A program made the translations under genes and the position numbers. Below, one piece after another: positions 1,955 through 58,100 of a stretch of 64,000 bases of DNA (position 1 is the first letter of the stretch; each line of letters opens with the position of its first letter). The DNA is from Selaginella moellendorffii (taxonomy: Eukaryota; Plantae; Lycopodiophyta): assembly GCF_000143415.4 (NCBI RefSeq), contig NW_003314367.1, positions 248,001 through 312,000 of the forward strand, written 5' to 3'. The notes under the pieces are model-generated. The model did no database searches. It saw only the letters and a program-made list of their open reading frames with translations, and was not told the origin of the DNA.

Positions 1955-3350
1955 CCTCTGTGCATTCAAAGCATCAACGAGTCATGTTGAAAACCATTGC
2001 CCGAATTGACACTCCAACCTCACTCAGTGCCGACATTCCTTGAGCAGAGCGAAAAGCTCATCCGTAGTCTGTTTAAATGCGTGATCTTCAGCCGCGGGAC
2101 CTCGGAAATCTGGAATCTGGTACCAGAAAGGTCAGTAGCAGATCACCAGCAAATGTACAGTTCCTACACTCTGAGCTTGGCGCTTGAGCAACGGTGGTAG
2201 GATATCGAGTTCTGGAATGAATCTGCAAAGCCAAAACCTTCTGAAGCTGAAAACAGACTAAAGGCAGAAACAGAAATATCTCACGATTCGGCCAGACCTG
2301 CAGTGCAAACGTCCCTCTCTTTTCTTCCTCTTACGACCCTTTGTAAGCCATGCAGGAAATCTGAGTTTATCTTCCATCTGCAAAACACATATCGTAGAAT
2401 ATCCGAACAAGGTTATTAAAGCTTACAGCATCGAACGCTCCCTCCTCCCTTGCAGAACAGATGAACTGCAGATCACATACCAGTACATACCAGTACATCA
2501 GTTGAGAAGTTGCATGTCATACCAGGTCAGAGCCAGAACTGCACAAAGTAAGTTTGTGAGCTCCCATGTCCGATACTTGTGCATGCTTTTGCTGGTCATG
2601 TCTCCAACGTAAAGGTAATCCGAAGCTTTTGAAATAGAATCCATGATAAACGCTTCCTTTCAGTTAGCAGGCTTGTAGCTGATGTAGTTTTCCTGACAGA
2701 AACAAGATAGACAAAAAAAAGGTCGAAATTGTTGTCTTACCTGAACAAGGAGTGCAACAAACTCGAAATCTTCAAGTATGAGATTGATGCGAGCTTGAAG
2801 AGGTTGGTTCGTCCGAGTGCCTAATTCAGCGCACAAGCTTAAGAACAACGTGTGGTAGTAGTAGTCGTAATGCTGTGTTCGGATTCTTACCTGTCTACGA
2901 CAGCGAACGAACTCGGCATACTATCTTTCGCATCTAGTTTCCTGTTTACGGGATTTCCAGCACACAGATACTGCAGACTTCAGTGATCAGAAAGAAACAC
3001 AGATTGGAAATACCACCAGGTACGACACCTGCATCTGAAGCAAACTCTGTCGAACATTCCGTTGAGCGCTGTCTACAAGCAATTTCAGAAATTCCTGAAC
3101 CAAAGCTTTTGTCAGCAGCTCGTGAATCGCACCAAGCTACCTTATCCACAAGCACGTTTTCTTGCTCCTGAACGCCGAAAAGCAATTTCAAGATCTGAAG
3201 AATAAACAGCGTTACCAGACGTATCGTTTGTTTTGGGTTTCTGGAACTTGAGCTCGACACAGTAATCCGCAAGATTGCGGATGCGCTTGTGATATCTGTC
3301 ATTACATATGCAAATGACTGGAAGTTTGGCCCGTCTTACTAAATCAGATC
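1955..3350 (-). pseudogene. RFC1: Divergent replication factor C subunit 1-like gene, 3' part (end of AAA+ domain plus RFC1 C-terminal domain), multi-exon
   Basis: Exons read AKLPVICICNDRYHKRIRNLADYCVELKFQKP; EFLKLLVDSAQRNVRQSLLQMQ; ARINLILEDFEFVALLVQ|ENYISYKP; ISKASDYLYVGD..KYRTWEL; RFPAWLTK. These are collinear with RFC1 motifs (PIICICNDRY, GDIRxAxNxLQ, PLLIQENY, FxxWLGK). In-frame TGA at ~2660; the 5' part is replaced by BRWD sequence. Confidence 0.75.
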
Positions 3351-4590
3351 GCCGTGTGGCCACGAAGTATTGCAACCGGAACACCATCTGGTAATCCCCA
3401 CTAAAGGCAGAAGCGAAATAAATCAAAAGAAGAAACAAAAACACAACAAAGGAATACTTACAACACGGATGGAGGAATCGTTAGAAGCTGATGCAACTAG
3501 AGTGTTCGAACTACTTACAGACAAATCGGTTATATCCCCCTAAAAGCCAGGTTTTAAGCACAATATTCGAAACGGATGCAGAAAATAGTACCCCGTGTCC
3601 TCTACAGCTACGAAGGCAAAGTCTATTTTCTACGGACCATATCTTCACAAGCCGGTCGTCCGAGCCAGTGACAAGATACCGTCCAGTACGATAAAAAACG
3701 GCTGCATGTTTATCGCTTCGTTAATAGGTCTTGAAAATCAAAAAGAAAAGAAACACGTACCACAATATACCGCATTACGATGACCCCTTAGCACCTGGAT
3801 GATTCTTATTCTGTTCACCAGTACAGATGGCTTGATGATAACATGTTTCACAGTCCGTGTGGATGGCGGTCTGTGATGCTTTGCAAATCCACCACCAAGT
3901 TCACGGAACGCGAGAGCATGAACTTGGTCAGCTTGCCAATGCGGCCATCGCATTTGTTCTATTCTCTTGGTAGAGATACTAGTAGCATTGCTTTGCTCCG
4001 CTGTATGAAGTTTGCTCGGATCAGCAACGGCAAGATTCGAAAAGTACACGGCTTACATTCCAAAAGCGAGAATGCTCCTGACCCCAAAAGCGTAGGAACG
4101 TCAGCGGCAGTCAATTGCTTGGGAACTTTCGCATCAAGCAAGGACGCGGACTTGTCGTGAACAAGTAGTTGCTGCAAGAGCTTAACCAAGTGGTTGTTGT
4201 CAACGTTCTTATATCTGAAATTCGAAAAAAAAAATATCCATCCTTTTGTCAGCAAGACAAACCAAAAAAACAAAGAACTTAGCGACACACAATACCTCTC
4301 GGCAACTTGCGCGTAGCTGAGTGGGAACGACAAACCATCGTCATTCTCGTCGGCGGGGGGCGTTCCATTCCTGATGGTACCTCCGGGGCAAGAGCTTGTG
4401 CTGTAGGAGCTCGTTCCAGAGCTGGTCAGTGGCTCTCTCATAAGGGCCTCTCCTCAGGAAGTGCATGATAACTTCCCCAACTTGATCTCCTCGTCTTGTT
4501 CATGCAGGTGATGATTAGCTCCAACATCAGACCGTAAAGCCACCTACGTTAGTCAGTCTGCACGAGAGGTTAGCTAAGCTGCATGAAGAT
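3351..4590 (-). pseudogene. BRWD/PHIP-like gene, 5' fragment (type A)
   Basis: HFLRRGP..LWNELLQHKLLPRRY, LSFPLSY..VAERY, HLVKLLQQLL, VPTLLGSGAFSLL, LRGHRNAVYC and the first WD40 repeats. Truncated at 3351. Confidence 0.85.
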
Positions 4591-4916
4591 TGCACCCGAG
4601 TCTACTTGAAGACAGAAAACTTGAAAGCTTCGATTGAATGTTCCGTTACCATACAAAGCATTTGAACCCAGTGACTATATGCAATATCCGCAGCTCCAAA
4701 GGACCTCCTGAATAAATAGTTACACTCATCCACCTACAAGGAAGTACCAATTAGACAATGCCAGGCCACGTTCATGTCTATGTTCTTGCCCGGAAAAGGA
4801 CTTACTATCAGAAGCTCACAACATATGAGCCTTTTTATTTCGAAGAACGAAGATCCGAATCAGAAAAAAAATTCCTGAGAAAAAAAAAGAACAGCTTTGT
4901 CATTTCTATGAATCAA

Positions 4917-5530
4917 CTACTGATCATTGAACCAGCAGGAGCGCCACTTACCCACCACTGTGCTCTTTGCACACGACTTGACCAAGCCATCCAAACCCTG
5001 ATCCAGTATTTTAAAAGCCGCACAACGTATTTTGGAGGCTGGGTTGTGATCTCGATTGCTGATGTTTCTGCGACTTAACAAATGCTTACCTGATAGAGGG
5101 ATGTGGAACAGTCGATCATGACTTGGTTGTGGGCTGCTATAAAATCCTGGAGCAGGAATGGGATCCATTCGTGCAGCAGTGAGGGAGGATTTGCAAGCGA
5201 TCCATGGTGCATTGAAGGAGGATGTGGTTGCCATGGCTAGAGCAGTGAATGTTGCGGTTATGCGTGCTGCAATCAAGGAGGACCTCCAGGCACTTCATGA
5301 CACAGTGAAGGAACCACAGCAACATCTTCCTTTATGGCACTATGGATTATTGGCAAATCCTCCCTCACTGCCGCACGAATGCCAGAGGCCATCACCTGGA
5401 GATTCTCAGTCACAGCTCCCATTCCTGCACGCATGGCAGATGCCAGCACCAGCACACAAGCTGTGGTCACGATGCACAGCACACTGATCACAATGGTGCT
5501 AACAAGCACCATCGCAATCAGAAACTCCAT
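4917..5530 (-). pseudogene. TM-CC orphan gene type A, copy disrupted by an internal 165-bp inversion (5148-5312)
   Basis: N-terminus MEFLIAMVLVSTIVISVLCIVTTACVLVLASA is on the minus strand, while the repeat block MGSIRAAVREDLQAIHGALKED..TVKE is on the plus strand. Compare the intact copy at 46732-47350. Confidence 0.85.
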
Positions 5531-5986
5531 TGGTAGGGTTTGCAGCAAAACCTTAGTAAAATCGAGAACGAAATAAGGTTTGCAACAGCTATGAAAGACG
5601 CAAATGACACTCTTACCAGAAGTTCGAGCCGCCTGCCCTATCTTCGCAAGAACCCTAAGCTAACGGTCGCTTTATCTTACATACAATGGGCCACTGGCCA
5701 CTTTCTTGGTGGGCCGCCATTCGTACAGTGGTCTGGCGGGAACTCGAGTTCCTTGTGCCACGATCAGTGGATTCTCGCGATTTCTATCAGTACACGGGCT
5801 CGATGACAAGAGGAGGAGGAAGAGGAGGAGGAAGAGGAGAAGGATGGCACTCCATCTCCTCGACTTCTTTCATCCTCATGGTTTTCCATCCTCGGACTGA
5901 TCTCGTGTTTGACAATGTAGATGGATGTGTAAGGAAAATGTTTCTTTTCTTCGTTAACTAAGACCTCGAGAAAATTCTTACAAAGC

Positions 5987-8900
5987 TCACATTTGCAGTG
6001 CCTCAGAGAAGCGTTCTCTCAGCCGCTCCACCTTGAGCACCGACGAATGCTGCTTCCCAAAATATGTCCGGAAGTTGTCGATCAGTATCCTAAGATCGTG
6101 TGACACCGCCATCACGCTACGCTACGATAATAGTTGTTCTCCAGCCGCTCGCGAATCACGTCCATGGAGATTGGCAGCGCAATCCTGCATTGTTTGAAAA
6201 CCTTTAGCTTCTTTCTCAATCGCAAGAGATTTTTCCAACTTGCCTGTCAAGAAAATCCGGCTTGCTCACGGCCTGCTGCAACCTCCACAAGCCATACTCG
6301 TCCTGTGAAAAGCAAAAGCTCGTCAAGCCAAGACCAAAACCAAAACATTCCTCGAGTCTATGATCGATCGCACAAAAACAAACCTTGGATTGGTTCGAGT
6401 GGAGCACCTCGTCCACGATGTCGAGCAGCTCACGCACCTTGTCCTGCTCGATCTGTGGCGACTCCCAAGTTAAAGGATTCTCAACGTCGTGAAGCTCCCA
6501 GGGGCAGTGGTTCGTCGTCGATGGCTCGTCCTTGTACAGCACACTGATGCTGTCCCTGGGGCTGTTTGGAAACTCGGGCGACTTTCCCTTCACCTGAGTT
6601 ATCGTCCCTTCCCACCAGCGACCACCTTCTTCCTCGTCCGACCTCCACCACACTTGGCACTTGTCCCGACTGGACCACTTCCTGGCCATGGAGGCCTCGT
6701 AGCGGCTTCTCTCCACTATAAAGTCGGCGAAGTCTGTCAGCTCCGGCAAGTCGACGCTGAAGCTGCTGCCGCGAATCCTGTACCCGTCCATAAACTCAAG
6801 AGTCAGCCGGCAACAAGTGTTCCCCGACACTTCGAGAATGATGTACTCCAGTCCAGTGATCTCGCAGAACTCGACCACTTGCAGTTCCCTTTTCACGCTT
6901 CTCCAGGGACCATCGTCGTCGAGCCGCTTGTTGTCTAAGTAGTCTTGATGTCCCTGCGATCGACAGTTTCAATTCAAACATAATTCAAGACAAGCTCGTT
7001 GGATCTCTTACCTGTCGGAAGTACACCACCTCATCACCATACTGTGGGATGTAGCGCGTCCGCTCCACCTCTGTCAAGAGTAACCAGGACACGTTGCTCG
7101 GACTCCGATGCACCGTGCTCAGGTTTCTCCTCACGTGGAAATCCTTGTACCTCGACCCAACGTTCTTCTGCAGCTTCACTTTAAGTCTGCTCGAAGTTCT
7201 TCTTTCGGGCTTTCGGCGTCCATCGTCGTCGCTGCTTCTATCCCAGTCCGAGTCGTCGTAAGACGAGCTAGCTTCCCAGTGTGAGGGACGGCCGACGTTT
7301 CTCCTGCTTCTTGTGGACCTGCTGTTGGAGAGACTAACCACGCGACCCTGCGCCAGCCGTGTACTTCTCCTGCGGCCACCTGAAGCGTGCTCGTCGGCCT
7401 CATAACACTCGGTCTTAGTCGCAACTTTGCGAGGCCTTCTCCTTGAGTAGACGGCCTTGTTCATATTGCGCTTCATTTGTATATCGTCCACGTCCAGGTC
7501 CTCACTTGCCTGCTCTTCCTCGGGCTTGTAAGCATCCTCCAGCGACTCACTGTTACTGCCTGGTGAAACCTCTTCGTGGTAATCAGGGTCATTGTCACCA
7601 TCTGGAGCTTCTCCATTCTGTAAGGACTCAATGACAGTCATCCAGAAACAGATGGTTTTATCGCGGACGAGAATCCCACTGAAGCTGTTTCGTCTGACGA
7701 CAAACAGGGATACATATGGAAGAAGGGGAAAGCAGCCAAGCGTGCTCGCATGCCTTATCACAGCAGCAGCAGCTCGGAAGAGGATAAACTGGTAGACGTT
7801 CCTTGTGATACCAAGGAAGGTCTTGAAGCGACTCGTGTAGAAAATGGAGACACAAAGGTGGTGGCAAGGGCGATCATTAGCGAGTCCGAGTCGGAGAGGT
7901 CTCTTTCAGCTGACTACCTTGACGAACAGCAGAGACGAGAGCAGAATCACACTCTTATGAGCAATAGCCTCGGCCACGGGGACTTTAGAAGTGCCTTGTT
8001 CTGGTATTTCGAGGCTCTGAAAAGTATCCTCGTTGTTGGACGTTTGTGCACAGTTTCTCAACTTGAGTACTAACTTTCGCTGAGACCTTGGCCGCCTGCA
8101 TTTACCCACGTCCGAAGTCTCTGCGGGACTCTTCTTCAGAGGTTCATCGTCTTCACGTTCCTGAGTTTCTGTAAGAACTTTCCCGTTGCGTAGAAGCCTC
8201 TGGTTCTCGTTCTCTCCAGATGTACCAGGTCTTTTGGCATCCTCAGCGGCCAGGCGGCGTGCTCCGTCGTCTTCGTACTCATGTAAGCTCGAAAACATGG
8301 TCAAGGCATTCCAAGCTGCCATCCTCATAGGCCTCAATGCATGGTCCGTGTTTGACTTTCTTATCAGACCTCAATATCTGTGTTTCCTCTCTCCTTTAGT
8401 TTCCTCATCGGCATCAAAAGTGCATTGTATGACTCCTCCAAGCGCCAGCGCTTTTGCTTCCTGACCAAGGTCGCAAGTATCTGTAATGGATTATCAGAAA
8501 CACAAAAACTTCACGTACATACCTCTCTCCTTCTTTGGGTACGAACCACTTCAGAATCTAATTCGTCATTTTCTTTGTCGGTTGTTTCTGATTCACAGAT
8601 CGTACCACTTTCTTCATTTCCATCCTCGTCACTCAAGAAACTGGGATAAAGAAGTCACCGGCTTGAGTGACGAGTCTGGTTCTGACTACTGCGCGAGCGA
8701 AGAAAGCTCTCCGCCGGTTGTTCTACCCATCTGTTGCCTTGCTTGTTTGTTTGCTCAATCGCTTGCAGAGAAGAAACTGAGGCTTATCCTGAGGAATGAA
8801 AGCTGGATCATCAAACGTTCCCACTGCGAGCTGAACTGATGGTGGTTGCCAGTAGCAACCTAGGAGTCCCAGACGACGTTGCTGGTACGAGCTTTGATAA

Positions 8901-13039: not shown

Positions 13040-13460
13040 ATGCTCGTAGTCACTGCGAAGTCTGTCAGCCGGCAAGTCAATGCTGAAGCTGTTGCCGCGA
13101 ATCCTGTACACGTCCATAAACTCGAGAGTGAGCCGGCCCAACACTCCGAGAATGTACTCCAGTTAGGTGATCTCGCAGAACGCTCGGAGTTCTCACCCTT
13201 CCATCGTCGTCAAGCTAGTGTTGATGTCCCTGCGATCAGTTTCAATTCAAACATAATTCAAGGCAAGCTCGTTGGATCTCTTACCCCACTTACCCACCTT
13301 GCGCCTTGATCAAGTATTTTAAAATCCGCACAAAATCAAAATTTAACAAATGCTTACATGATAGAGGGATGTGGAACACCATAATTTGGTTGTGGGTATG
13401 TCCTCTTTCAGTGTGCCATGAAGTGCCTGGAGGTCCTGCTTGATTGCAGCATGAATTGCG
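13040..13460 (-). pseudogene. Chimeric remnant: TM-CC 3' fragment fused to an internal BRWD (Tudor-region) exon fragment
   Basis: 13040-13290 matches 6720-7010 (FCEIT.LEYI..LTLEFMD.YRIRG). 13290-13460 matches the TM-CC intron and 3' end. Paralogs at ~37367-37790 and 60490-61270. Confidence 0.75.
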
Positions 13461-13599
13461 GAAGTCATGACTGCAGTATATGTAAGATTATAAACTTAAA
13501 TTTTAACAACAAACAAACTCAAATCTTTGTGATTGATGGATGAATGAAGAAAACGCTAACATAACCATTAGCATATAGCTATTACTCTCTAGTGTTTGT

Positions 13600-13824: not shown

Positions 13825-14039
13825 ACTTTAAGCATGTTAGCTACGTAAAGATTACAAAATTTTAAATATTTTATTGTGGAAAGTCAATAAGATTCCAAAG
13901 TAGTATATTTAAGATTTTGTAATCCTAGTTTTAATGTCATTTGCCTGAAAATCTGAGAGGACTTAACTCATGTCGTCCGGGAAATAAGTTTGAAAATTTC
14001 CCACTATAGTTCTCACTGAAATGTTCAAACCCTATTTCA

Positions 14040-16024
14040 AATCAAGATTCGTATGTGTTTGAGAGCAGCACGTAACAAGACGAGTTCGTTTCATCCAACT
14101 TCTGCACTTGTTGAGCAATCTTTCGTTTGGTTATTCCCATGAGTGAGTCCAAGCAACGGGACTAGGATGGAAGGGCAAGTTGTGAATCAAATCCTGAGCT
14201 TCAGCCAGCCTTCCTGCTCTTCCCAGATGATCGGCGATGCAGATGTAATGCTCAGCCATGGGATCAACACCATAGTCGTTTCTCAAGCTCACAACATACG
14301 TCCACCCGTCTTTCAGCTCCCCACAGTGACAACAAGACGAAAGCACCGCGATGAAGGTGATTCCATCCGGTTCAACTGCATCCAAACCCATCTCCTTGAA
14401 GAGATCCAGAGCTAGCAGGCCATGACCACTCTGTGCATATGCCGATATCATCGCACTCTAAGACACCGTGCGTCTTTCAGGCATCGCATCGAAGATCCGA
14501 CGAGCCTCCTCCAAACTCCCGCACTTCCCATACATTGTCAGGATCGACGTCGAAACCGGCTCCAACGCGCTGAATCCGGCGGGGACGGCTTCGGGGTGGA
14601 TCAGCTTCCCGACTCTGTGCAACAGTCGACTCTGAGCAACGAGACCGTTGCACAGGCGTCGAAGATCGTAACGAAGGTGATCTCGTTGGGTTGCAAGCCT
14701 TCAAGATCCATCTTTCGAAACAACGCGATGGCCTGCTGATTATGCCCGTTGTGCGAATATGCCGCAATCGTAACGTTCCAGGAAACCACATCTCTGCAAG
14801 GCATCTGATTCAAGACATCCACAGCTTGATCAACCAGTCCGTTCTGAGCATAGGCTGTGACCATTGAGTTCCAGGTCACGACATCCCTCTCAGGCATCTT
14901 TTCAAACAACACCCTTGCCTCACGTAAATGACCGTTTTGCGCATACGCTCTAACGATCGTCGTCCACGATACGACATTCTTCTCCGGCATCGCATCAAAC
15001 ACCATCCTCGCAAGTCCCAAATCGCCCTCCGAAGCGTACGCAGCTACGATCGTGTTCCTTTGCTGAGGCATTCCGTCAAACAAAACCTTTGCTCGAGCGG
15101 TGTCGCCATTTTGAGCATACGCGGAGATCATCAGCGACCACGAAACCAGATCTCTCCTCGGCATCTCTTCGAACAATGTCTCGGCCTCGCGAAAACGCTT
15201 CGTGTGAGCGTAACCAGATATCATCACATTCCAAGAGACGACGTCTTTCTCGGGCATCAACTCGAAAACCTTCTTCGCTTCGTCTTAATGTCCGTACTGA
15301 CAATACGCAGCCAGCATGGCTGTCCAGACCAGAACATTCCTCTCAGGCATTCCTTCAAAAACCTTCCTCGAATCCTCGACTTTGCCGTTGCGAGCGTACG
15401 CCGTGAGCATCGCGCTCCAGGAAACGACGCTTCGATACGGCATCAGATCGAAGAAATCTTATGATGAGTCTAAATCACCCATCTGCCAGTAGGCAGTGAT
15501 CATCGTCGTCCAGGAAGCCACATCTTTATTACCCATGCTCTCGAACAAGCTTCTAGCATGCAGCAGACGACCATTCTGCGCAAACACTTCCATCATCACG
15601 TTCCAGGCGACTATATCACGACCAGGCATCGAATCAAACAGATCCTCAGCCTCTTCAAGACCACCAGTTCTTCCGTAGGCTTCTAGCATTATCGTCCAGG
15701 AAACCACATTCTTGATCGGCATCTTACCGAACAAAATCCTCGCTTGCAGCAACTGACCATTCTCTGTATATGCACGGATCATGATGTTCCAAGTGAACGC
15801 TATTTAACACTATCAAACACGTCGCGAGCATCAGGCAAACTCCCGCATTTCCCGTACATCTGAACGAGCAGATTGCAGAGGACTGTGTTGGACGCATGGA
15901 TCTCTCTGTGAAGTTGTTTCCCTCTGGCTAAGTCTCTGGTAAGAGCGCAGGATTTCAGCAGCGAGACGTACAGAGCTGGGCTGATGGTGGTGCTAGAAAC
16001 GCACATCTCTGTCAACTGAATCAT
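14040..16024 (-). pseudogene. PLS-class (E subgroup) pentatricopeptide repeat pseudogene, unit 1
   Basis: Tandem MPERDVVSW/T..MI.AYAQNG repeats, MYGKCGS, PDGITF..VLSSCCH.G, YVLLSN. Stops at ~15800, 15459, ~15287 and ~14460; 17-bp duplication frameshift at ~14620. Confidence 0.92.
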
Positions 16025-16731: not shown

Positions 16732-17159
16732 TGAAACTCTTGCAACTGGGAATGAATCAATTGAAGCAAAAGCAGAGTAATGTATATGTATTATTTAACA
16801 TACAATTAACAAAATGTTTGCAAAAAACATTAATTCTATGAAAATAGTCAACTCTATGTTTTGTTACATTCCACTGAGGAATGTTGTCACGAAGAGTGGC
16901 GGTCAAGCTATGTTGCTATCTTCCTCCTTGAGCGCAGTTTGCCGAGCGTATGGGGAATTCTAATCGGTACATAATATTCTTTTCCATACAAAGAATATTT
17001 TTAAGTGTCAAGTTTAAGGATTTTATAAAAATATAATTATTATTTTGTATTTATATATTTATAATTATATTTATATATATATAACTAAATATAAACTATA
17101 ATATAAACATAACTCTTCTTGAAGACTTGTTTCCACCAGTCAGTCCCCATTACACAGTG

Positions 17160-22342: not shown

Positions 22343-22845
22343 ATCACTGAACCAGCAGCAGCGCCACTTTGCGCTTTGGACACGACCTGATCAAGCCATC
22401 CAAACCCTGATCCAGTATTTTAAAAGCCGCACAAAATCTAGATCTGACAAATGCTTACCTGATAGAGGGATGTGGAACAGTCGACCATGACTTGGTTGTG
22501 GGCTGCTATAACATCCTCCTTCACTGTGTCGTGAAGTGCCTGGAGGTCCTCCTTGATTGCAGCACGCATAGCCGCAACGTTCAGTGCTCCAACCACAGCA
22601 ACAAAGTCCTCCTTCAAGGCACCATGGATCTCCCTCACTGCTGCACGAATGGATCCCATTCCTGCTCCAACCATGGCAACAACGTCTTCCTTTATGGCAC
22701 CATGGATTGCTGGCACATCCTCCCTCACTGCACCATGGATCGCTTGCACATCCTCCCTCACTGCCGCATGAATGCCGGAGGCCATCACCTGGAGATTCTC
22801 AGTCACGGCTCCCATTCTTGCACGCATGGCAGATGCCAGCACCAT
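22343..22845 (-). pseudogene. TM-CC type A, copy lacking the N-terminal TM helix and start
   Basis: Un-inverted AVREDVQAIHG repeats. A deletion at ~22843 joins VLASA directly to upstream non-coding DNA. Confidence 0.8.
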
Positions 22846-23137: not shown

Positions 23138-26100
23138 TCACATTTGCAGTGCCTCAGAGAAGCGTTCTCTCAGCCGCTCCACCTTGAGCACCGACGAATG
23201 CTGTTTCCCAAAATATGTCCGGAAGTTGTCGATCAGTATCCTAAGATCGTGTGACACCGCCATCACGCTACGATAATAGTTGTTCTCCAGCCGCTCGCGA
23301 ATCACGTCCATGGAGATTGGTAGCGCAATCCTGCATTGATTGAAAACCTTTAGCTTCTTTCTCAATCGCAAGAGATTTTTCCAACTTGCCTGTCAAGAAA
23401 ATCCGGCTTGCTCACGGCCTGCTGCAACCTCCACAAGTCATACTCGTCCTGCGAAAAGCAAAAGTTCGTCAAGCCAAAAGCAAAAGCAAAACCTTCCTCG
23501 AGTCTATGATCGATCGCACAAAAACAAACCTTGGATTGGTTCGAGTGGAGCACCTCGTCCACGATGTCGAGCAGCTCACGCACCTTGTCCTGCTCGATCT
23601 GTGGCGACTCCCAAGTTAAAGGATTCTCAACGTCGTGAAGCTCCCAGGGGCAGTGGTTCGTCGTCGATGGCTCGTCCTTGTACAGCACACTGATGCTGTC
23701 CCAGGGGCTGTTTGGAAACTCGGGCGACTTTGCCTTCACCTGAGTTATCGTCCCTTCCCACCAGCGACCACCTTCTTCCTCGTCCGACCTCCACCACACT
23801 TGGCACTTGTCCCGACTGGACCACTTCCTGGCCATGGAGGCCTCGTAGCGGCTTCTCTCCACTATAAAGTCGGCGAAGTCTGTCAGCTCCGGCAAGTCGA
23901 CGCTGAAGCTGCTGCCGCGAATCCTGTACCCGTCCATGAACTCGAGAGTCAGCCGGCAACAAGTGTTCCCCGACACTTCGAGAATGATGTACTCCAGTCC
24001 GGTGATCTCGCAGAACTCGACCGCTTGCAGTGCCCTTTTCACGCTTCTCCAGGGACCATCGTCGTCGAGCCGCTTGTTGTCTAAGTAGTCTTGATGTCCC
24101 TGCGATCGACAGTTTCAATTCAAACATAATTCAAGACAAGCTCGTTGGATCTCTTACCTGTCGGAAGTACACCACCTCATCACCATACTGTGGGATGTAG
24201 CGCGTCCGCTCCACCTCTCTCAAGAGTAACCAGGACACGTTGCTCGGACTCCGATGCACCGTGCTGAGGTTTCTCCTCACGTGGAAATCCTTGTACCTCG
24301 ACCCCACGTTCTTATGCAGCTTCACTTTAAGTCTGCTCGAAGTTCTTCTTTCGGGCTTTCGGCGTCCATTGTCGTCGCTGCTTCTATCCCAGTCCGAGTC
24401 GTCGTAAGACGAGCTAGCTTCCCAGTGTGAGGGACGGCCGACGTTTCTCCTGCTTCTTGTGGACCTGCTGTTGGAGAGACTAACCACGCGACCCTGCGCC
24501 AGCCGTGTACTTCTCCTGCGGCCACCTGAAGCGTGCTCGTCGGCCTCATAACACTCGGTCTGAGTCGCAACTTTGCGAGGCCTTCTCCTTGAGTAGACAG
24601 CCTTGTTCATATTGCGCTTCATTTGTATATCGTCCACGTCCAGGTCCTCACTTGCCTGCTCTTCCTCGGGCTTGTAAGCATCCTCCAGCGACTCACTGTT
24701 ACTGCCTGGTGAAACCTCTTCGTGGTAATCAGGGTCATTGTCACCATCTGGAGCTTCTCCATTCTGTAAGGACTCATTGCTCAGAAGAGTGTGATTCTGC
24801 TCTCGTCTCTGCTGTTCGTCAAGGTAGTCAGCTGAAAGAGACCTCTCCGACTCGGACTCGCTAATGATCGCCCTTGCCACCACCTTTGTGTCTCCATTTT
24901 CTACACGAGTCGCTTCAAGGCCTTTCTTGGTATCACAAGGAACGTCTACCAGTTTATCCTCTTCGGAGCTGCTGCTGCTGTGATAAGGCATGCGAGCACG
25001 CTTGGCTGCTTTCCCCTTCTTCCATATGTATCCCTGTTTGTCGTCAGACGAAACAGCTTCAGTGGGATTCTCGTCCGCGATAAAACCATCTGTTTCTGGA
25101 TGACTGTCATTAGCCTCGGCCACGGGGACCTTAGAAGTGCCTTGTTCTGGTATTTCGAGGCTCCGAAAAGTATCCTCGTTGTTGGACGTTTGTGCACAGT
25201 TTCTCAACTTGAGTACTAACTTTCGCTGAGACCTTGGCCGCCTGCATTCACCCACGTCCGAAGTCTCTGCGGGACTCTTCTTCGGAGGTTCATCGTCTTC
25301 AGGTTCCTGAGTTTCTGTAAGAACTTTCCCGTTGCGTAGAAGCCTCTGGTTCTCGTTCTCTCCAGATGTACCAGGTCTTTTGGCATCCTCAGCGGCCAGG
25401 CGGCGTGCTTCGTCGTCTTCATACTCATGTAAGCTCGAAAACATGGTCAACGCATTCCGAGCTGCCATCCTCATAGGCCTCAATGCATGGTCCGGGTTTG
25501 ACTTTCTTATCCGCTTTCTAGACCTCAGCCTCTGCGTTTCCTCAGGCATCAAAAGAGCATTGTTTGACTCCTCCAAGCGCCTGCGCTTTTGCTTCCTCAC
25601 CAAGGTTGCGAGTATCTGTAGTGGACAATCACCATTGAAGTTATCAGAGACGCAAAAGCTGGACGTACGTACCTCTCTCTTCTTTTTCCTTGTTCTTCGG
25701 TTACGAACCCCATCAGAATCAATTTCGTCAATTTCTTTGTCGGTTGTTTCCGATTCACAGATCGTACCACTTTCTTCATTTCCATCCTCGTCACTCGAGC
25801 TTTCTTCGCTCGCGCAGTAATCAGAACCAGAATCGTCACTCAATCCAGTGACTTCTTCATCCCAGTCCATTGCCTCACCATCCGCCGGTTGTTCTACCCA
25901 TCTGTTGCCTTGCTCGTTTGTTTGCTCGATTGCTTGTAGAGCGGCAACTACTGCTTGAGGCTGATCTTGAGGAATGAACGCTGGATCATCAAACGTTCCC
26001 ACTGCGAGCTGAACTGATGGTGGTTGCCAGTAGCAACCTAGGAGTCCCAGACGACGTTGCTGGTACGAACTTTGATAAGGTTCTGGATAGGGAATCAAGC

Positions 26101-29527: not shown

Positions 29528-30091
29528 CTACTGATCATTGAACCAGCAGCAGCGCCACTTACCCACCACTATGCTCTTTGCACACGACTTGATCAAGCCA
29601 TCCAAACCCTGATCCAGTATTTTAAAAGCCGCACAAAATCTAGATCTAACAAATGCTTACCTGATAGAGGGATGTGGAATAGTCGATCATGACTTGGTTG
29701 TGGGCTGCTATAACATCCTGGAGCATGAATGGGATCCATTTGTACAGCAGTGAGGGAGGATTTGCAAGCGATCCATGGTGCATTGTTGCCATGGCTAGAG
29801 AAGTGAATGTTGCAGCTATGCATGCTGCAATCAAGGAGGACTTCCAAGCACTTCACGATACAGTGAAGGAACCACGGCAACAACGTCTTATTTTATGGCA
29901 CTATGGATTGTTGGCAAATCCTCCCTCACTGCCGCACGAATGCCAGAGGCCATCACCTGGAGATTCTCAGTCACAGCTCCCATTCTTGCACACATGGCAG
30001 ATGCCAGCACCAGCACACAAGCTGTGGTCACGATGCACAGCACACTAATCGCAATGGTGCTAACAAGCACTATGGCAATCAAAAACTCCAT
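29528..30091 (-). pseudogene. TM-CC type A with internal inversion (29719-29870), unit 2
   Basis: Same breakpoints as 5148-5312, plus a 13-bp deletion. Confidence 0.85.
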
Positions 30092-30538: not shown

Positions 30539-33500
30539 TCACATTTGCAGTGCCTCAGAGAAGCGTTCTCTCAGCCACTCCACCTTGAGCACCGACGAAT
30601 GCTGTTTCCCAAAATATGTCCGGAAGTTGTCGATCAGTATCCTAAGATCGTGTGACACCGCCATCACGCTACGATAATAGTTGTTCTCCAGCCGCTCGCG
30701 AATCACGTCCATGGAGATTGGTAGCGCAATCCTGCATTGATTGAAAACCTTTAGCTTCTTTCTCAATCGCAAGAGATTTTTCCAACTTGCCTGTCAAGAA
30801 AATCCGGCTTGCTCACGGCCTGCTGCAACCTCCACAAGTCATACTCGTCCTGTGAAAAGCAAACGCTCGTCAAGCCAAGACCAAAACCGAAACATTCCTC
30901 GAGTCTATGATCGATCGCACAAAAACAAACCTTGGATTGGTTCGAGTGGAGCACCTCGTCCACGATGTCGAGCAGCTCACGCACCTTGTCCTGCTCGATC
31001 TGTGGCGACTCCCAAGTTAAAGGATTCTCAACGTCGTGAAGCTCCCAGGGGCAGTGGTTCGTCGTCGATGGCTCGTCCTTGTACAGCACATTGATGCTGT
31101 CCCTGGGGCTGTTTGGAAACTCGGGCGACTTTCCCTTCACCTGAGTTATCGTCCCTTCCCACCAGCGACCACCTTCTTCCTCGTCCGACCTCCACCACAC
31201 TTGGCACTTGTCCCGACTGGACCACTTCCTGGCCATGGAGGCCTCGTAGCGGCTTCTCTCCACTATAAAGTCGGCGAAGTCTGTCAGCTCCGGCAAGTCG
31301 ACGCTGAAGCTGCTGCCGCGAATCCTGTACCCGTCCATAAACTCAAGAGTCAGCCGGCAACAAGTGTTCCCCGACACTTCGAGAATGATGTACTCCAGTC
31401 CGGTGATCTCGCAGAAGTCGACCACTTGCAGTTCCCTTTTCACGCTTCTCCAGGGACCATCGTCGTCGAGCCGCTTGTTGTCTAAGTAGTCTTGATGTCC
31501 CTGCGATCGACAGTTTCAATTCAAACATAATTCAAGACGAGCTCGTTGGATCTCTTACCTGTCGGAAGTACACCACCTCATCACCATACTGTGGGATGTA
31601 GCGCGTCCGCTCCACCTCTGTCAAGAGTAACCAGGACACGTTGCTCGGACTCCGATGCACCGTGCTCAGGTTTCTCCTCACGTGGAAATCCTTGTACCTC
31701 GACCCAACGTTCTTCTGCAGCTTCACTTTAAGTCTGCTCGAAGTTCTTCTTTCGGGCTTTCGGCGTCCATCGTCGTCGCTGCTTCTATCCCAGTCCGAGT
31801 CGTCGTAAGACGAGCTAGCTTCCCAGTGTGAGGGACGGCCGACGTTTCTCCTGCTTCTTGTGGACCTGCTGTTGGAGAGACTAACCACGCGACCCTGCGC
31901 CAGCCGTGTACTTCTCCTGCGGCCACCTGAAGCGTGCTCGTCGGCCTCATAACACTCGGTCTTAGTCGCAACTTTGCGAGGCCTTCTCCTTGAGTAGACG
32001 GCCTTGTTCATATTGCGCTTCATTTGTATATCGTCCACGTCCAGGTCCTCACTTGCCTGCTCTTCCTCGGGCTTGTAAGCATCCTCCAGCGACTCACTGT
32101 TACTGCCGGGTGAAACCTCTTCGTGGTAATCACTATTCCGAGCTGCTGCTGTTGTGATAAGGCATGCGAGCACGCTTGACTGCTTTCCCCTTCTTCCATA
32201 TGTATCCCTGTTTGTCGTCAGACGAAACAGCTTCAGTGGGATTCTCGTCCGCGATAAAACCATCTGTTTTTGGATGACTGTCATTAGCCTCGGACATGGG
32301 GACTTTAGAAGTGCCTTGTTCTGGTATTTCGAGGCTCTGAAAAGTATCCTCGTTGTTGGACGTTTGTGCACAGTTTCTCAACTTGAGTACTAACTTTCGC
32401 TGAGACCTTGGCCGCCTGCATTCACCCACGTCCGAAGTCTCTGCGGGACTCTTCTTCAGAGGTTCATCGTCTTCACGTTCCTGAGTTTCTGTAAGAACTT
32501 TCCCGTTGCGTAGAAGCCTCTGGTTCTCGTTCTCTCCAGATGTACCAGGTCTTTTGGCATCCTCAGCGGCCAGGCGGCGTGCTCCGTCGTCTTCGTACTC
32601 ATGTAAGCTCGAAAACATGGTCAAGGCATTCCAAGCTGCCATCCTCATAGGCCTCAATGCATGGTCCGTGTTTGACTTTCTTATTAGACCTCAATATCTG
32701 TGTTTCCTCTCTCCTTTAGTTTCCTCATCGGCATCAAAAGTGCATTGTATGACTCCTCCAAGCGCCAGCGCTTTTGCTTCCTGACCAAGGTCGCAAGTAT
32801 CTGTAATGGATTATCAGAAACACAAAAACTTCACGTACATACCTCTCTCCTTCTTTGGGTACGAACCACTTCAGAATCTAATTCGTCATTTTCTTTGTCG
32901 GTTGTTTCTGATTCACAGATCGTACCACTTTCTTCATTTCCATCCTCGTCACTCAAGAAACTGGGATAAAGAAGTCACCGGCTTGAGTGACGAGTCTGGT
33001 TCTGACTACTGCGCGAGCGAAGAAAGCTCTCCGCCAGTTGTTCTACCCATCTGTTGCCTTGCTTGTTTGTTTGCTCAATCGCTTGCAGAGAAGAAACTGA
33101 GGCTTATCCTGAGGAATGAAAGCTGGATCATCAAACGTTCCCACTGCGAGCTGAACTGATGGTGGTTGCCAGTAGCAACCTAGGAGTCCCAGACGACGTT
33201 GCTGGTACGAGCTTTGATAAGGTTCTGGATAGGGAATCAAGCCTGAAAATGAAACAGAAAAATAAGTTGGCCGAGGTAAGAAGTCACCAGCTTACTTGCA
33301 TCGCACAAGAGATCTTGAAGATTCCTTTGATGAGGAGGCAACCGAGTTTCCTGTTAAAGAAAGACATTCAGTTCGCACAAGAATAATAGCGGACAGGAAC
33401 AACACTCAGGACTAAAACTAAATAAAAGCACTTACATCATTTTATTTACCTGATCGAGAACGTTTCCATCCAAGAAAAAACTAGAAAAAACAAAAATAAT

Positions 33501-47816: not shown

Positions 47817-50800
47817 TCACATTTGCAGTGCCTCAGAGAAGCGTTCTCTCAGCCGCTCCACCTTGAGCACCGACGAATGCTGTTTCCCAAAATATGTCCG
47901 GAAGTTGTCGATCAGTATCCTAAGATCGTGTGACACCGCCATCACGCTACGATAATAGTTGTTCTCCATCACGTCCATGGAGATTGGTAGCGCAATCCTG
48001 CATTGTTTGAAAACCTTTAGCTTCTTTCTCAATCGCAAGAGATTTTTCCAACTTGCCTGTCAAGAAAATCCGGCTTGCTCACGGCCTGCTGCAACCTCCA
48101 CAAGCCATACTCGTCCTGTGAAAAGCAAAAGCTCGTCAAGCCAAGACCAAAACCGAAACATTCCTCGAGTCTATGATCGATCGCACAAAAACAAACCTTG
48201 GATTGGTTCAAGTGGAGCACCTGAGCAGCTCACGCACCTTGTCCTGCTCGATCTGTGGCGACTCCCAAGTTAAAGGATTCTCAACGTCGTGAAGCTCCCA
48301 GGGGCAGTGGTTCGTCGTCGATGGCTCGTCCTTGTACAGCACACTGATGCTGTCCCAGGGGCTGTTTGGAAACTCGGGCGACTTTGCCTTCACCTGAGTT
48401 ATCGTCCCTTCCCACCAGCGACCACCTTCTTCCTCGTCCGACCTCCACCACACTTGGCACTTGTCCCGACTGGACCACTTCCTGGCCATGGAGGCCTCGT
48501 AGCGGCTTCTCTCCACTATAAAGTCGGCGAAGTCTGTCAGCTCCGGCAAGTCGACGCTGAAGCTGCTGCCGCGAATCCTGTGCCCGTCCATGAACTCGAG
48601 AGTCAGCCGGCAACAAGTGTTCCCCAACACTTCGAGAATGATGTACTCCAGTCCGGTGATCTCGCAGAACTCGACCGCTTGCAGTTTCCTTTTCACGCTT
48701 CTCCAGGGACCATCGTCGTCGAGCCGCTTGTTGTCTAAGTAGTCTTGATGTCCCTGCAATCGACAGTTTCAATTAAAACATAATTCAAGACAAGCTCGTT
48801 GGATCTCTTACCTGTCGGAAGTACACCACCTCATCACCATACTGTGGGATGTAGCGCGTCCGCTCCACCTCTGTCAAGAGTAACCAGGACACGTTGCTCG
48901 GACTCCGATGCACCGTGCTGACGTGGAAATCCTTGTACCTCGACCCAACGTTCTTCTGCAGCTTCACTTTCAGTCTGCTCGAAGTTCTTCTTTCGGGCTT
49001 TCGGCGTCCATCGTCGTCGCTGCTTCTATCCCAGTCCGAGTCGTCGTAAGACGAGCTAGCTTCCCAGCGTGAGGGACGGCCGACGTTTCTCCTGCTTCTT
49101 GTGGACCTGCTGTTGGAGAGACTAACCACGCGACCCTGCGCCAGCCGTGTACTTCTCCTGCGGCCACCTGAAGCGTGCTCGTCGGCCTCATAACACTCGG
49201 TCTTAGTCGCAACTTTGCGAGGCCTTCTCCTTGAGTAGACGGCCTTGTTCATATTGCGCTTCATTTGTATATCGTCCACGTCCAGGTCCTCACTTGCCTG
49301 CTCTTCCTCGGGCTTGTAAGCATCCTCCAGCGACTCACTGTTACTGCCTGGTGAAACCTCTTCGTGGTAATCAGGGTCATTGTCACCATCTGGAGCTTCT
49401 CCATTCTGTAAGAACTCATTGCTCATAAGAGTTTGATTCTGCTCTCGTCTCTGCTGTTCGTCAAGGTAGTCAGCTGAAAGAGACCTCTCCGACTCGGACT
49501 CGCTAATGATCGCCCTTGCCACCACCTTTGTGTCTCCATTTTCTACACGAGTCGCTTCAAGGCCTTTCTTGGTATCACAAGGAACGTCTACCAGTTTATC
49601 CTCTTCGGAGCTGCTGCTGTGATAAGGCATGCGAGCACGCTTGGCTGCTTTCCCCTTCTTCCATATGTATCCCTGTTTGTCGTCAGACGAAACAGCTTCA
49701 GTGGGATTCTCGTCCGCGATAAAACCATCTGTTTCTGGATGACTGTCATTAGCCCCGGCCACGGGGACCTTAGAAGTGCCTTGTTCTGGTATTTCGAGGC
49801 TCCGAAAAGTATCCTCGTTGTTGGACGTTTGTGCACAGTTTCTCAACTTGAGTACTAACTTTCGCTGAGACCTTGGCCGCCTGCATTCACCCACGTCCGA
49901 AGTCTCTGCGGGACTCTTCTTCGGAGGTTCATCGTCTTCACGTTCCTGAGTTTCTGTAAGAACTTTCCCGTTGCGTAGAAGCCTCTGGTTCTCGTTCTCT
50001 CCAGATGTACCAGGTCTTTTGGCATCCTCAGCGGCCAGGCGGCGTGCTTCGTCGTCTTCGTACTCATGTAAGCTCGAAAACATGGTCAACGCATTCCGAG
50101 CTGCCATCCTCATAGGCCTCAATGCATGGTCCGGGTTTGACTTTCTTATCCGCTTTCTAGGCCTCAACCTCTGCGTTTCCTCAGGCATCAAAAGAGCATT
50201 GTTTGACTCCTCCAAGCGCCTGCGCTTTTGCTTCCTCACCAAGGTTGCGAGTATCTGTAGTGGACAATCACCATTGAAGTTATCAGAGACGCAAAAGCTG
50301 GACGTACGTACCTCTCTTTTCTTTTTCCTTGTTCTTCGGTTACGAACCCCATCAGAATCGATTTCGTCAATTTCTTTGTCGGTTGTTTCCGATTCACAGA
50401 TCGTACCACTTTCTTCATTTCCATCCTCGTCACTCGAGCTTTCTTCGCTCGCGCAGTAATCAGAACCAGAATCGTCACTCAATCCAGTGACTTCTTCATC
50501 CCAGTCCATTGCCTCACCATCCGCCGGTTGTTCTACCCATCTGTTGCCTTGCTCGTTTGTTTGCTCGATTGCTTGTAGAGCGGCAACTACTGCTTGAGGC
50601 TGATCTTGAGGAATGAACGCTGGATCATCAAACGTTCCCACTGCGAGCTGAACTGACGGTGGTTGCCAGTTGCAACCTAGGAGTCCCAGCCGACGTTGTT
50701 GGTACGAACTTTGATAAGGTTCTGGATAGGGAATCAAGCCTGAAAATGAAACAGAAAAATAAGTTGGACGAGGTAAGAAGTCACCAGCTTACTTGCATCG

Positions 50801-54161: not shown

Positions 54162-54719
54162 CTACTGATCATTGAACCAGCAGCAGCGCCACTTACCCAC
54201 CACTGTGCTCTTTGCACACGACTGGATCAAGCCATCCAAACCCTGATCCAGTATTTTAAAAGCCGCACAAAATCTAGATCTAACAAATGCTTACCTGATA
54301 GAGGGATGCGGAATAGTCGATCATGACTTGGTTGTGGGCTGCTATAACATCCTGGAGCATGAATGGGATCCATTTGTGCAGCAGTGAAGGAGGATTTGCA
54401 AGCAATCCATGGTGCATTGTTGCCATGGCTAGAGCAGTGAATGTTGCAGCTATGCGTGCTGCAATCAAGGAGGACCTCCAAGCACTTCACGATACAGTGA
54501 AGGAACCACAGCAACAACGTCTTCTTTTATGGCACTATGGATTGTTGGCAAATCCTCCCTCACTGCCGCACGAATGGCCATCACCTTGAGATTCTCAGTC
54601 ACAGCTCCCATTCCTGCACGCATGGCAGATGCCAGCACCAGCACACAAGCTGTGGTCACGATGCACAGCACATTAATCGCAATGGTGCTAACAAGCACTA
54701 TAGCAATCAAAAACTCCAT
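54162..54719 (-). pseudogene. TM-CC type A with internal inversion (54353-54504), unit 3
   Basis: Same inversion breakpoints as in units 1-2. Confidence 0.85.
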
Positions 54720-55192: not shown

Positions 55193-58100
55193 TCACATTT
55201 GCAGTGCCTCAGAGAAGCGTTCTCTCAGCCGCTCCACCTTGAGCACCGACGAATGCTGTTTCCCAAAATATGTCCGGAAGTTGTCGATCAGTATCCTAAG
55301 ATCGTGTGACACCGCCATCATGCTACGATAATAGTTGTTCTCCAGCCGCTCGCGAATCACGTCCATGGAGATTGGCAGCGCAATCCTGCATTGTTTGAAA
55401 ACCTTTAGCTTCTTTCTCAATCGCAAGAGATTTTTCCAACTTGCCTGTCAAGAAAATCCGCCTTGCTCACGGCCTGCTGCAACCTCCACAAGCCATACTC
55501 GTCCTGTGAAAAGCAAAAGCTCGTCAAGCCAAGACCAAAACCGAAACATTCCTCGTGGTTCGAGTGGAGCACCTCGTCCACGATGTCGAGCAGCTCACGC
55601 ACCTTGTCCTGCTCGATCTGTGGCGACTCCCAAGTTAAAGGATTCTCAACGTCGTGAAGCTCCCAGGGGCAGTGATTCGTCGTCGATGGCTCGTCCTTGT
55701 ACAGCACACTGATGCTGTCCCAGGGGCTGTTTGGAAACTCGGGCGACTTTGCCTTCACCTGAGTTATCGTCCCTTCCCACCAGCGACCACCTTCTTCCTC
55801 GTCCGACCTCCACCACACTTGGCACTTGTCCCGACTGGACCAGTTCCTGGCCATGAAGGCCTCGTAGCGGCTTCTCTCCACTATAAAGTCGGCGAAGTCT
55901 GTCAGCTCCGGCAAGTCGACGCTGAAGCTGCTGCCGCGAATCCTGTGCCCGTCCATGAACTCGAGAGTCAGCCGGCAACAAGTGTTCCTCAACACTTCGA
56001 GAATGATGTACTCCAGTCCGGTGATCTCGCAGAACTCGACCGCTTGCAGTTCCCTTTTCACGCTTCTCCAGGGACCATTGTCGTCGAGCCGCTTGTTGTC
56101 TAAGTAGTCTTGATGTCCCTTCTTGATGTCCCGGAAGTACACCACCTCATCACCATACTGTGGGATGTAGCGTGTCCGCTCCACCTCTGTCAAGAGTAAC
56201 CAGGACACGTTGCTCGGACTCCGATGCACCGTGCTGAGGTTTCTCCTCACGTGGAAATCCTTGTACCTCGACCCAACGTTCTTCTGCAGCTTCACTTTCA
56301 GTCTGCTCGAAGTTCTTCTTTCGGGCTTTCGGCGTCCATCGTCGTCGCTGCTTCTATCCCAGTCCGAGTCGTCGTAAGACGAGCTAGCTTCCCAGTGTGA
56401 GGGACGGCCGACGTTTCTCCTCCTTCTTGTGGACCTGCTGTTGGAGAGACTAACCACGCGACCCTGCGCCAGCCGTGTACTTCTCCTGCGGCCACCTGAA
56501 GCGTGCTCGTCGGCCTCATAACACTCGGTCTTAGTCGCAACTTTGCGAGGCCTTCTCCTTGAGTAGACGGCCTTGTTCATATTGCGCTTCATTTGTATAT
56601 CGTCCACGTCCTGCCTGCTCTTCCTCGGGCTTGTAAGCATCCTCCAGCGACTCACTGTTACTGCCTGGTGAAACCTCTTCGTGGTAATCAGGGTCATTGT
56701 CAGCATCTGGAGCTTCTCCATTCTGTAAGGACTCATTGCTCATAGAGTGTGATTCTGCTCTCGTCTCTGCTGTTCGTCAAGGTAGTCAGCTGAAAGAGAC
56801 CTCTCCGACTCGGACTCGCTAATGATCGCCCTTGCCACCACCTTTGTGTCTCCATTTTCTACACGAGTCGCTTCAAGGCCTTTCTTGGTATCACAAGGAA
56901 CGTCTACCAGTTTATCCTCTTCGGAGCTGCTGCTGCTGTGATAAGGCATGCGAGCACGCTTGGCTGCTTTCCCCTTCTTCCATATGTATCCCTGTTTGTC
57001 GTCAGACGAAACAGCTTCAGTGGGATTCTCGTCCGCGATAAAACCATCTGTTTCTGGATGCTCATGATTTGGCCTTCCGGTGTACTCGTCCGCCCACTTT
57101 CTTGCGTCCCAAACCTGTTCCAACAATTGTTAGAAATATAAAAAGTCCACTTTAAATGCTTACTCTGGCAAGCTTGTCCGAACTCCCAGTGACAAAGTAT
57201 GAGCCATCTGCATTAAACGCACAGCACTGAATCTGATTTGTAGCCTGTGCTCGATTCTCAGCTCCTGCAGCTGGAAACAAGCTTTTAGAAGACCAAAAAA
57301 ACATCGGCAGACTCTTTACATTCGGGCTCGACATCCGGCTTCGGCATGTAGACAACTTGACAGAGGTTCCGTCTTCAGGTCGGGGACTAAACTTGATGGC
57401 CGTTACGTGGTCACGAAGTGTTGCAACCGGAACACCATCTGGTAATCCCCACTAAAGGCAGAAGCAAAACGAATCAAAACAAAAAACAGGAGGACTCGTT
57501 AGAAGCTGATGCAACTAAAGTGTTCGAACTACTTACAGACAAATCGGCTATCTCCCACAAAAAAGCCAGGTTTTTAAGCACAGTAATCGAAACCAAGGTT
57601 CTTGCATAGTCCAAACCTCCGCAGCTACGAAGGCGAAGCCTATTTCTACTGCGATGCATTGCAAATTCACCACCAAGTTCGAGAGCATGAACGTGGTCAG
57701 CTTGCCAATGCATTTGTTCTATTCGCTTCATAGAGATACTTGTAGCATTTCTTTGCTCCGCTGCCAGTAGTTTGCTCGGATCAGCAACGGCAAGATTCGA
57801 AAAGACAAGGCTTACATTCCAAAAGCGAGAATGCTCCTGATCCCGAAAGAGTAGGAACGTCCGCGGCAGTTAACTGCTTGGACACTTTCGCATCACGCGA
57901 ACACGCAGTTGCTGCAAGAGCTTGTTGTCAACGTTCTTACACCTGCAAATCATCTTCTTGTCAACATGGAAAACCAATAAAGGACTTGGCGACACACAGT
58001 ACCTCCGCAACTTGCACGTCGCGGAGTGGGAACGACAAACATCGTCATTTTCATCAGCGGTGGGCATCCCATTCCTGGAGAAAAATTCATGGTACCTCCG

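Follow-up and report, generated by a model that had tools for sequence, protein, structure and literature searches.

Can one small rearrangement turn a copy of a gene into a source of RNA against its own relatives? The question is raised by a 64,000-nucleotide stretch of Selaginella moellendorffii DNA (contig NW_003314367.1, positions 248,001 to 312,000; hereafter the window), which holds five copies of a small repeat-built gene. Three of them, called A1, A2 and A3, contain an internal inversion and are predicted to fold back on themselves, and the other two, B1 and B2, are un-inverted. An initial annotation of the window had traced the fold-backs to an internal inversion, had pointed to inverted duplication of a target gene as a recognised origin of plant hairpin-siRNA and proto-MIRNA loci, and had suggested that the array may carry its own RNA silencer of the gene. 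The features on which the analysis rests are collected in Table 1.

Table 1. Positions of the gene copies, inverted blocks and hairpin elements in the window
Feature	Position	Strand	Basis
Copy A1, exon 1, disrupted	5075..5548	-	ORF list, gene-strand reading, collinear BLAST segments to B2
Inverted block of A1, 163 bp, sense strand now plus	5149..5311	+	92.7% reverse BLAST match to 46905-47069; junctions read
Arm within the inverted block of A1	5166..5230	.	Repeat search, folding, pairing
Loop region of A1, 86 nt, holds the proximal inversion junction 5311/5312	5231..5316	.	Repeat search, folding, junction reading
Arm in the un-inverted 5' part of A1 exon 1, codes SGIRAAVREDLPIIHSAIKEDVAVV on the minus strand	5317..5381	.	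Repeat search, ORF list, pairing
Upstream region of A1, homologous to B2 upstream, presumed promoter and 5' UTR	5531..5830	-	Five-copy alignment
Inverted block of A2, 150 bp, same junctions, 13-bp deletion, TGA stop	29720..29869	+	Repeat search, BLAST, folding
Inverted block of A3, 150 bp, same junctions, same 13-bp deletion, TGA stop	54354..54503	+	Repeat search, BLAST, folding
Copy B1, un-inverted, second potential target or another dead copy	22438..22845	-	BLAST, ORF list, upstream alignment
Copy B2, alone in the window in having an unbroken exon-1 frame, potential target	46832..47350	-	172 codons to first stop; no inverted repeat; fold control z +0.12

The gene lies on the minus strand and encodes an N-terminal membrane anchor followed by about seven amphipathic 11-residue motifs. 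In the B2 protein, the anchor consists of about 30 hydrophobic residues and the roughly seven diverged motifs are of the type AAVREDxQAIHG. The initial description of the gene as built of 33-bp repeats holds for these 11-codon motifs, but Tandem Repeats Finder detected no 33-bp array in A1 and one of just 2.1 copies in B2, the other motifs being too diverged to score. Exon 1 ends at the consensus donor CAG/GTAAGC, with inferred positions of 46846 in B2 and 5089 in A1, and the public models splice it to a short second exon (the exons were read by reference only). Those S. moellendorffii models of the gene, at LOC112347829 and LOC112342338, are frame-shifted. The closest proteins in a word-based search were two "uncharacterized" proteins of S. 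moellendorffii, with 93% and 82% identity, and that search found no others. Pfam returned only a sub-threshold apolipoprotein-like match (E 0.0039, 17 bits versus a cut-off of 90), and the ESM Atlas gave no usable match for the protein. As far as word-based, Pfam and ESM Atlas searches see, the small gene appears to be a lineage-restricted orphan. The pN/pS ratio between copies was 0.4 to 0.6, calculated from only 4 to 11 changes, a number too small to distinguish selection from drift.

The two un-inverted copies differ in their state of preservation. Compared with B2, B1 has a deletion of about 275 bp (22841-22845 versus 47245-47519) that took the start codon along with most of the anchor-coding sequence and the upstream DNA nearest the gene. 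B2 itself has a perfect 27-bp × 2.3 tandem duplication within the membrane-anchor codons (47243-47304, giving CIVTTACVL twice) that the A copies do not have. Older, short remnants of the 3' end of exon 1 are found at 13343-13468 and 37671-37778 (83% over 120 bp), one per full array unit in the window, with a 41-codon frame, MTSAIHAAIKQDLQALHGTLKEDIP....

The A copies are more severely disrupted. The A1 frame opens with an ATG at 5530 and runs for 85 codons: it departs from the gene at the inversion junction and, 12 codons further on, meets a stop at 5275-5273. The TGA within the block is common to A2 and A3, and A2 has another in-frame stop before the junction. No annotated protein resembled the truncated A reading frame in a word-based protein search. 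As read from the DNA, A1, A2 and A3 are dead copies, or pseudogenes, of the small repeat-built membrane-anchor gene.

The inversion was delimited by comparing A1 with B2. Using BLAST, the A1 segments 5076-5148 and 5318-5484 were collinear with B2 at 46833-46905 and 47112-47277, respectively, and the segment between them, 5148-5312, matched B2 at 46905-47069 in reverse orientation with 92.7% identity over 165 bp. On the gene strand, the A1 junctions read GTGGTT/CCTTCAC and CTGCTCC/AGGAT (slash at the breakpoint), and their B2 counterparts read GTGGTT/GGAGCAGG and GTGAAGG/AGGAT. Reading these junctions against each other gave the exact block of 163 bp. The inversion at 5148-5312 in the initial annotation is real, therefore, but was drawn one base too long at each end. 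An origin by inverted duplication was not borne out: the block was flipped in place between collinear flanks, with zero bases gained or lost.

The flipped block of A1 has a stop-free translation on the plus strand, GAGMGSIRAAVREDLQAIHGALKEDVVAM..., and its first units are paralogous to the SGIRAAVREDLPIIHSAIKEDVAVV units lying just upstream in the same exon. Since the flipped units and their upstream neighbors are paralogous, an inverted repeat arises by inversion alone, without duplication. Moreover, since the sense strand of the block is now the plus strand, a minus-strand transcript of A1 would be antisense to the paralog mRNAs within the block. A reading of the block as an invertible switch was rejected, as the block ends lack inverted repeats and the three diverged copies have one junction pair.

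A repeat search gave the A1 hairpin two arms of 65 nt that are 82% complementary, and the inverted repeats of A1, A2 and A3 were the top three short-range inverted repeats of the window. The A1 arms form 53 Watson-Crick pairs, to which a plus-strand RNA would add six G:U pairs and a minus-strand RNA two; this strand bias is not significant (one-sided p ~0.15 by our own binomial estimate). These figures agree with the manual count in the initial annotation of 49 matches in 60 (5167-5226 versus 5321-5380), and with its approximately five G:U pairs in a plus-strand transcript, and its loop of ~94 nt is correct for the shorter arms used there, the longer arms leaving 86 nt between them. Over arm positions 0 to 28, the sole unpaired position on the plus strand is 9, where a gene-strand RNA would form a wobble pair; the predicted gene-strand fold has a lower helix of 29 uninterrupted pairs. 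The A1 arms match B2 at 89 to 93% by BLAST, and the similarity that had been reported between the arms and several units in both B2 and B1 was likewise recovered.

Folding energies were compared with those of 200 dinucleotide shuffles. A1 5150-5400 gave a minimum free energy (MFE) of -133.5 kcal/mol on the plus strand (z -11.0) and -117.0 kcal/mol on the minus, or gene, strand (z -8.8). The gene strands of A2 and A3 gave -110.2 kcal/mol (z -8.7) and -113.7 kcal/mol (z -9.5), respectively. The equivalent un-inverted stretch of B2, also on the gene strand, gave -98.4 kcal/mol with a z of +0.12. Folding against the un-inverted paralog had been named at the outset as a check on the hairpin, and the inverted copies, at -8.7 to -11, came out clearly apart from B2. 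As a further energy control, the A1 block was flipped back in silico, which changed the energy from -117.0 to -82.5 kcal/mol on the gene strand and from -134.8 to -60.3 kcal/mol on the plus strand, a loss of stability of 35 to 75 kcal/mol. Because the flipped-back block and the un-inverted B2 both fold far less well, the hairpin can be ascribed to the inversion. The structure has the long, near-perfect intramolecular fold-back of an endogenous inverted-repeat siRNA locus (65-nt arms, 82% complementary, z -8.8 and -11). In structural terms, many 21-nt registers of the A1 arms also fall within the limits for a MIRNA duplex, namely, ≤5 mismatched positions of which ≤3 are asymmetric (Axtell & Meyers, bioRxiv 10.1101/213314).

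The two further hairpins indicated by the initial annotation (~29738-29941 and ~54372-54575) were confirmed by the repeat search. The A2 arms (29737-29781 and 29898-29942) are 45 nt long and 84% complementary, and the A3 arms (54370-54415 and 54532-54577) are 46 nt long and 87% complementary. Both copies have the same derived 13-bp deletion in one arm; A1, B1 and B2 are undeleted. The stem had been described as shorter in these copies, and indeed the deletion cuts short the ungapped alignment of the arms; past an asymmetric loop at the deletion, however, the predicted helix continues, and both copies fold as well as A1.

The window self-comparison places the copies in a higher-order tandem repeat of about 24.6 kb. 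Five sub-unit copies, each consisting of an upstream gene and the small repeat gene, lie at ~5.1, 22.6, 29.7, 47.1 and 54.4 kb, and one array unit comprises one A copy and one B copy. The array copies are 2 to 4% diverged and have mosaic relationships. The junctions of A1, A2 and A3 are identical to the base, and the block positions differ by 4 to 7% between copies. Since three diverged copies have identical junctions, a single inversion took place before the ~24.6-kb unit was amplified. In the 400 alignment columns adjoining the gene, the A copies differ from each other by 1.6 to 2.6%, B1 differs from B2 by 3.3%, and A differs from B by about 6%. These distances give the order of events as the A/B split, the inversion in the A type and then amplification of the A-plus-B unit. 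A protein encoded on another contig, P0002 (LOC112347829), has A-type block residues, RAVNVAVMRAAIKEDL, but its block runs straight on into the 3' part of the exon, so it is not inverted. This un-inverted A-type protein suggests that the A type predates the flip. Further upstream of the gene the five copies are mosaic, which suggests exchange or gene conversion among array copies.

We then compared the hairpins with their surroundings. Among A1, A2 and A3, the arms differ by 3 to 6% and the loop by 3.5 to 9%, and the flanks differ by 2 to 5% overall (2 to 3% in the non-genic stretch 3350-4950 and 1.5 to 4.6% in the upstream stretch 5531-6200). Six substitutions distinguish the stems of the A copies. 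All of them are single transitions and none is compensated; with the exception of one gain, in which a G:U pair became A:U, they all weaken or disrupt pairing on one or the other strand. The lower 45 to 48 bp of the stem are intact in all three copies. In these alignments, the rate of change in the arms, the 13-bp deletion and the stop codons resemble neutral pseudogene decay, although the constraint test is low in power with three young copies that are 2 to 7% diverged, and a newborn functional hairpin would look alike. The presumed target family itself looks decayed, with B1 missing its start and anchor, an anchor duplication in B2, frame-shifted public models and the old remnants.

Complementarity between the inverted blocks and the un-inverted paralogs was scored in 21-mers. 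Of 143 21-mers in the A1 block, 51 match B2 perfectly and 45 with one mismatch, so that 96 match with 0 or 1 mismatch. The A2 block has 130 21-mers, none perfect and 33 with one mismatch, and the A3 block has 130, with 15 perfect and 36 with one mismatch. Counts against B1 were similar to those against B2. Upstream, about 300 bp before the start codon are homologous between the A copies and B2 in the five-copy alignment, and hence there is no sequence sign of promoter loss in the A copies. The A copies may still use the inherited promoter for minus-strand transcription.

The hairpin matches no MIRNA family catalogued in Rfam 15, which gave zero matches at the gathering score over the whole window and, when the threshold was relaxed to E≤10 at the hairpin, no family matching across the fold-back. 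A match of one arm to the snoRNA GlsR13 (13.9 bits versus a gathering score of 100) and a weak match to mir-29 outside the arms (21.6 versus 46.7) were discarded as chance. The miRNA lists supplementing PMC5569507, which are restricted to conserved miRNAs, do not include the arm cores in either orientation; the only matches to the cores in those supplements were chance 9-mers in a gene-sequence file. S. moellendorffii is reported to have orthologues of DCL1, DCL3 and DCL4, no DCL2 and a weak 24-nt class (PMC5569507). Given this enzyme set, if the hairpin were diced, the products would most likely be 21-nt post-transcriptional RNAs.

The course of events begins with A- and B-type copies diverging by about 6%. 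One clean two-break inversion then flipped 163 bp within exon 1 of an A-type copy, with no DNA duplicated, such that in an exon-1 transcript a sense unit would pair with an antisense unit to form a fold-back of ~216 nt with a stem of 65 to 75 bp. Amplification of the whole ~24.6-kb unit, A and B together, produced the three hairpin copies and two un-inverted copies of the window. The structure, its origin in a single event, the stability of its fold and its match to the paralogs are shown by the sequence; the later steps, transcription, dicing and any silencing, we infer. Since they retain the upstream region of the intact gene, the A copies may still produce minus-strand transcripts. Fold-back RNAs of this type are processed into siRNAs by plant Dicer-like enzymes, and any guide strands derived from the antisense arm would pair with the mRNAs of B2 and B1 with 0 to 2 mismatches.

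How far along this path the locus has gone is best judged by weighing the possible readings together. We consider it probable that the hairpin is a young, neutrally drifting by-product, a proto-hairpin-RNA fold-back in pseudogenes that may give rise to some small RNAs if it is transcribed. A working silencer, in which the inherited promoter drives siRNAs made by DCL4, DCL3 or DCL1 that repress B2 and other un-inverted members, and which is kept to limit dosage, is a less likely candidate. In its favour are a stable gene-strand fold-back with 29 uninterrupted pairs in its lower helix, an antisense arm that over most of its length has 0 to 2 mismatches to B2 and B1, a retained upstream region and the ability of all three A copies to fold; Dicer-like enzymes are present in S. 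moellendorffii (PMC5569507), and rearranged paralog repeats in soybean (10.1101/2025.01.21.634198) and inverted pseudogene pairs in rice (PMC2708354) provide precedents. However, the arms have changed no more slowly than the flanks and show zero compensatory changes, A2 and A3 are missing 13 bp of one arm, Rfam gave no match and the core is absent from the PMC5569507 lists of conserved miRNAs, and the supposed target family looks decayed, B1 having no start and the public models being frame-shifted. It is doubtful that the locus has become a one-step hairpin-RNA gene in the full sense, using the promoter of its target and co-amplified with it in the 24.6-kb repeat so that three silencers face two targets as a dosage brake on a growing gene family.

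The remaining readings are less probable still. The 163-nt segment of an A transcript might act in trans on B2 mRNA without dicing, blocking its translation or stability in the way of the snail antiNOS RNAs, and here the origin is the same, a duplicated copy with an internal inversion, a truncated frame and an antisense region (PMC3537157), and intermolecular complementarity (92.7%) exceeds intramolecular complementarity (82%). We think this very unlikely, as the intramolecular stem would form first, at -117 kcal/mol, and compete with pairing in trans, and as long duplex RNA is normally diced in plants (PMC10827316). It is hard to argue that the truncated protein is what matters and that the hairpin is irrelevant. 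Starting at the ATG at 5530, the A1 frame is indeed open as far as the junction and would yield an 85-residue membrane-anchored fragment with the anchor and three repeat motifs, and snail antiNOS-2 RNA likewise encodes a truncated protein (PMC3537157), but the A2 frame already stops ahead of the junction, stop codons and frameshifts occur in two of the three copies, and no similar annotated protein was found. Finally, a tandem array of such high identity is hard to assemble, and the inversion could in principle be a mis-join in a repetitive region; we give this almost no credence in the face of base-identical junctions in three copies that differ at 4 to 7% of block positions and carry independent substitutions.

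In origin, the hairpin has its closest precedent in the antiNOS pseudogenes of Lymnaea stagnalis, in which an internal inversion occurred in a duplicated gene copy (Korneev et al. 1999; Korneev & O'Shea 2002; as summarised in PMC3537157). The A copies share the defining features of that type, being duplicated copies with an internal inverted segment, a disrupted frame and a region antisense to the parent mRNA. In both cases the transcript segment is antisense to the mRNA of an intact paralog, and a truncated frame lies upstream of the inversion. However, antiNOS is an animal system derived from a non-repetitive gene, it forms no intramolecular hairpin, and its RNA-RNA duplex in trans has been proven experimentally. 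In the A copies the exon is internally repetitive, and the inversion therefore yields a predicted self-folding hairpin as well.

In its predicted mode of action, the locus is nearer to the model of Allen et al. (2004), in which young MIRNA genes, such as Arabidopsis MIR161 and MIR163, arise from inverted duplication of their targets (as presented in PMC10827316 and PMC3237417). As in those genes, both arms of the A1 hairpin consist of target-gene sequence, homologous to the protein-coding B2, with complementarity that extends beyond one 21-mer and a fold-back of ~200 nt. Young MIRNA genes, though, involve new DNA made by inverted duplication and have proven, fairly precise small-RNA products. 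No DNA was added in the A copies, where a pre-existing neighboring tandem unit served as the second arm. The A-copy locus would work like the classical plant model of MIRNA birth but was made like antiNOS, with the internal repeats adding the hairpin.

Transcribed endogenous inverted repeats are a primary source of siRNAs that does not depend on RNA-dependent RNA polymerase, and they are suspected to be a starting point for MIRNA genes (PMC10827316). Loci of this class, such as Arabidopsis IR71 and maize Mu killer (PMC10827316), resemble the A copies in having a long, near-perfect intramolecular duplex for which no RNA-dependent RNA polymerase is needed. The IR71 duplex is ~3 kb and Mu killer is transposon-derived, whereas the A-copy stem is only 65 to 75 bp and lies inside the first exon of a pseudogene. 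Within gene families, rearranged CHS repeats at the I locus silence their own family in soybean (10.1101/2025.01.21.634198), and inverted pseudogene pairs yield siRNAs in rice (PMC2708354). There, as here, rearrangement of a tandem family makes a candidate source of double-stranded RNA against intact members; in those plants, however, whole genes or pseudogene pairs are inverted and the siRNAs were measured, while the A copies have a 163-bp intragenic flip read in the DNA. By comparison with these systems, the A-copy hairpin appears to belong to the known endogenous inverted-repeat, or proto-MIRNA, kind, and its mode of origin is uncommon.

If the hairpin is transcribed and diced, it would represent a natural one-step route to a gene-specific silencing RNA, in which inversion within a tandem-repeat exon is enough and no inverted duplication is required. 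A silencer of this type would inherit the promoter of its target and be expressed where and when the target is. The host is a lycophyte, whereas most work on how microRNA genes are born has been done in flowering plants. For now, the locus is a well-documented structural curiosity in pseudogenes.

The array contains other features as well. A minus-strand gene lies upstream of every copy of the small gene (6216-7761, 23362-26098, 30763-32371, 48208-50737 and 55417-56736), with frames of up to 655 codons and a stop ~0.7 to 0.9 kb upstream of the start of the small gene. Its 650- to 655-codon frames had zero Pfam matches at E≤0.001, and the frames at 6216-6896 and 55417-56736 had only sub-threshold Pfam matches to ARF and BRWD ancillary (Tudor-like) domains. 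Frames at 44155-45414 (+), 14601-15260 (-), 38935-39594 (-) and 62773-63723 (-) comprise an intronless archaeal-type STAND ATPase (ATPase_2, E 2.5e-15), PPR-repeat frames and a Copia-type reverse transcriptase fragment. Each array unit also has an AT-rich hairpin (13850-13924 and 38184-38258), whose 32-nt arms are 84% complementary and enclose an 11-nt loop, and an AT-rich palindromic low-complexity stretch (17038-17091 and 41384-41465).
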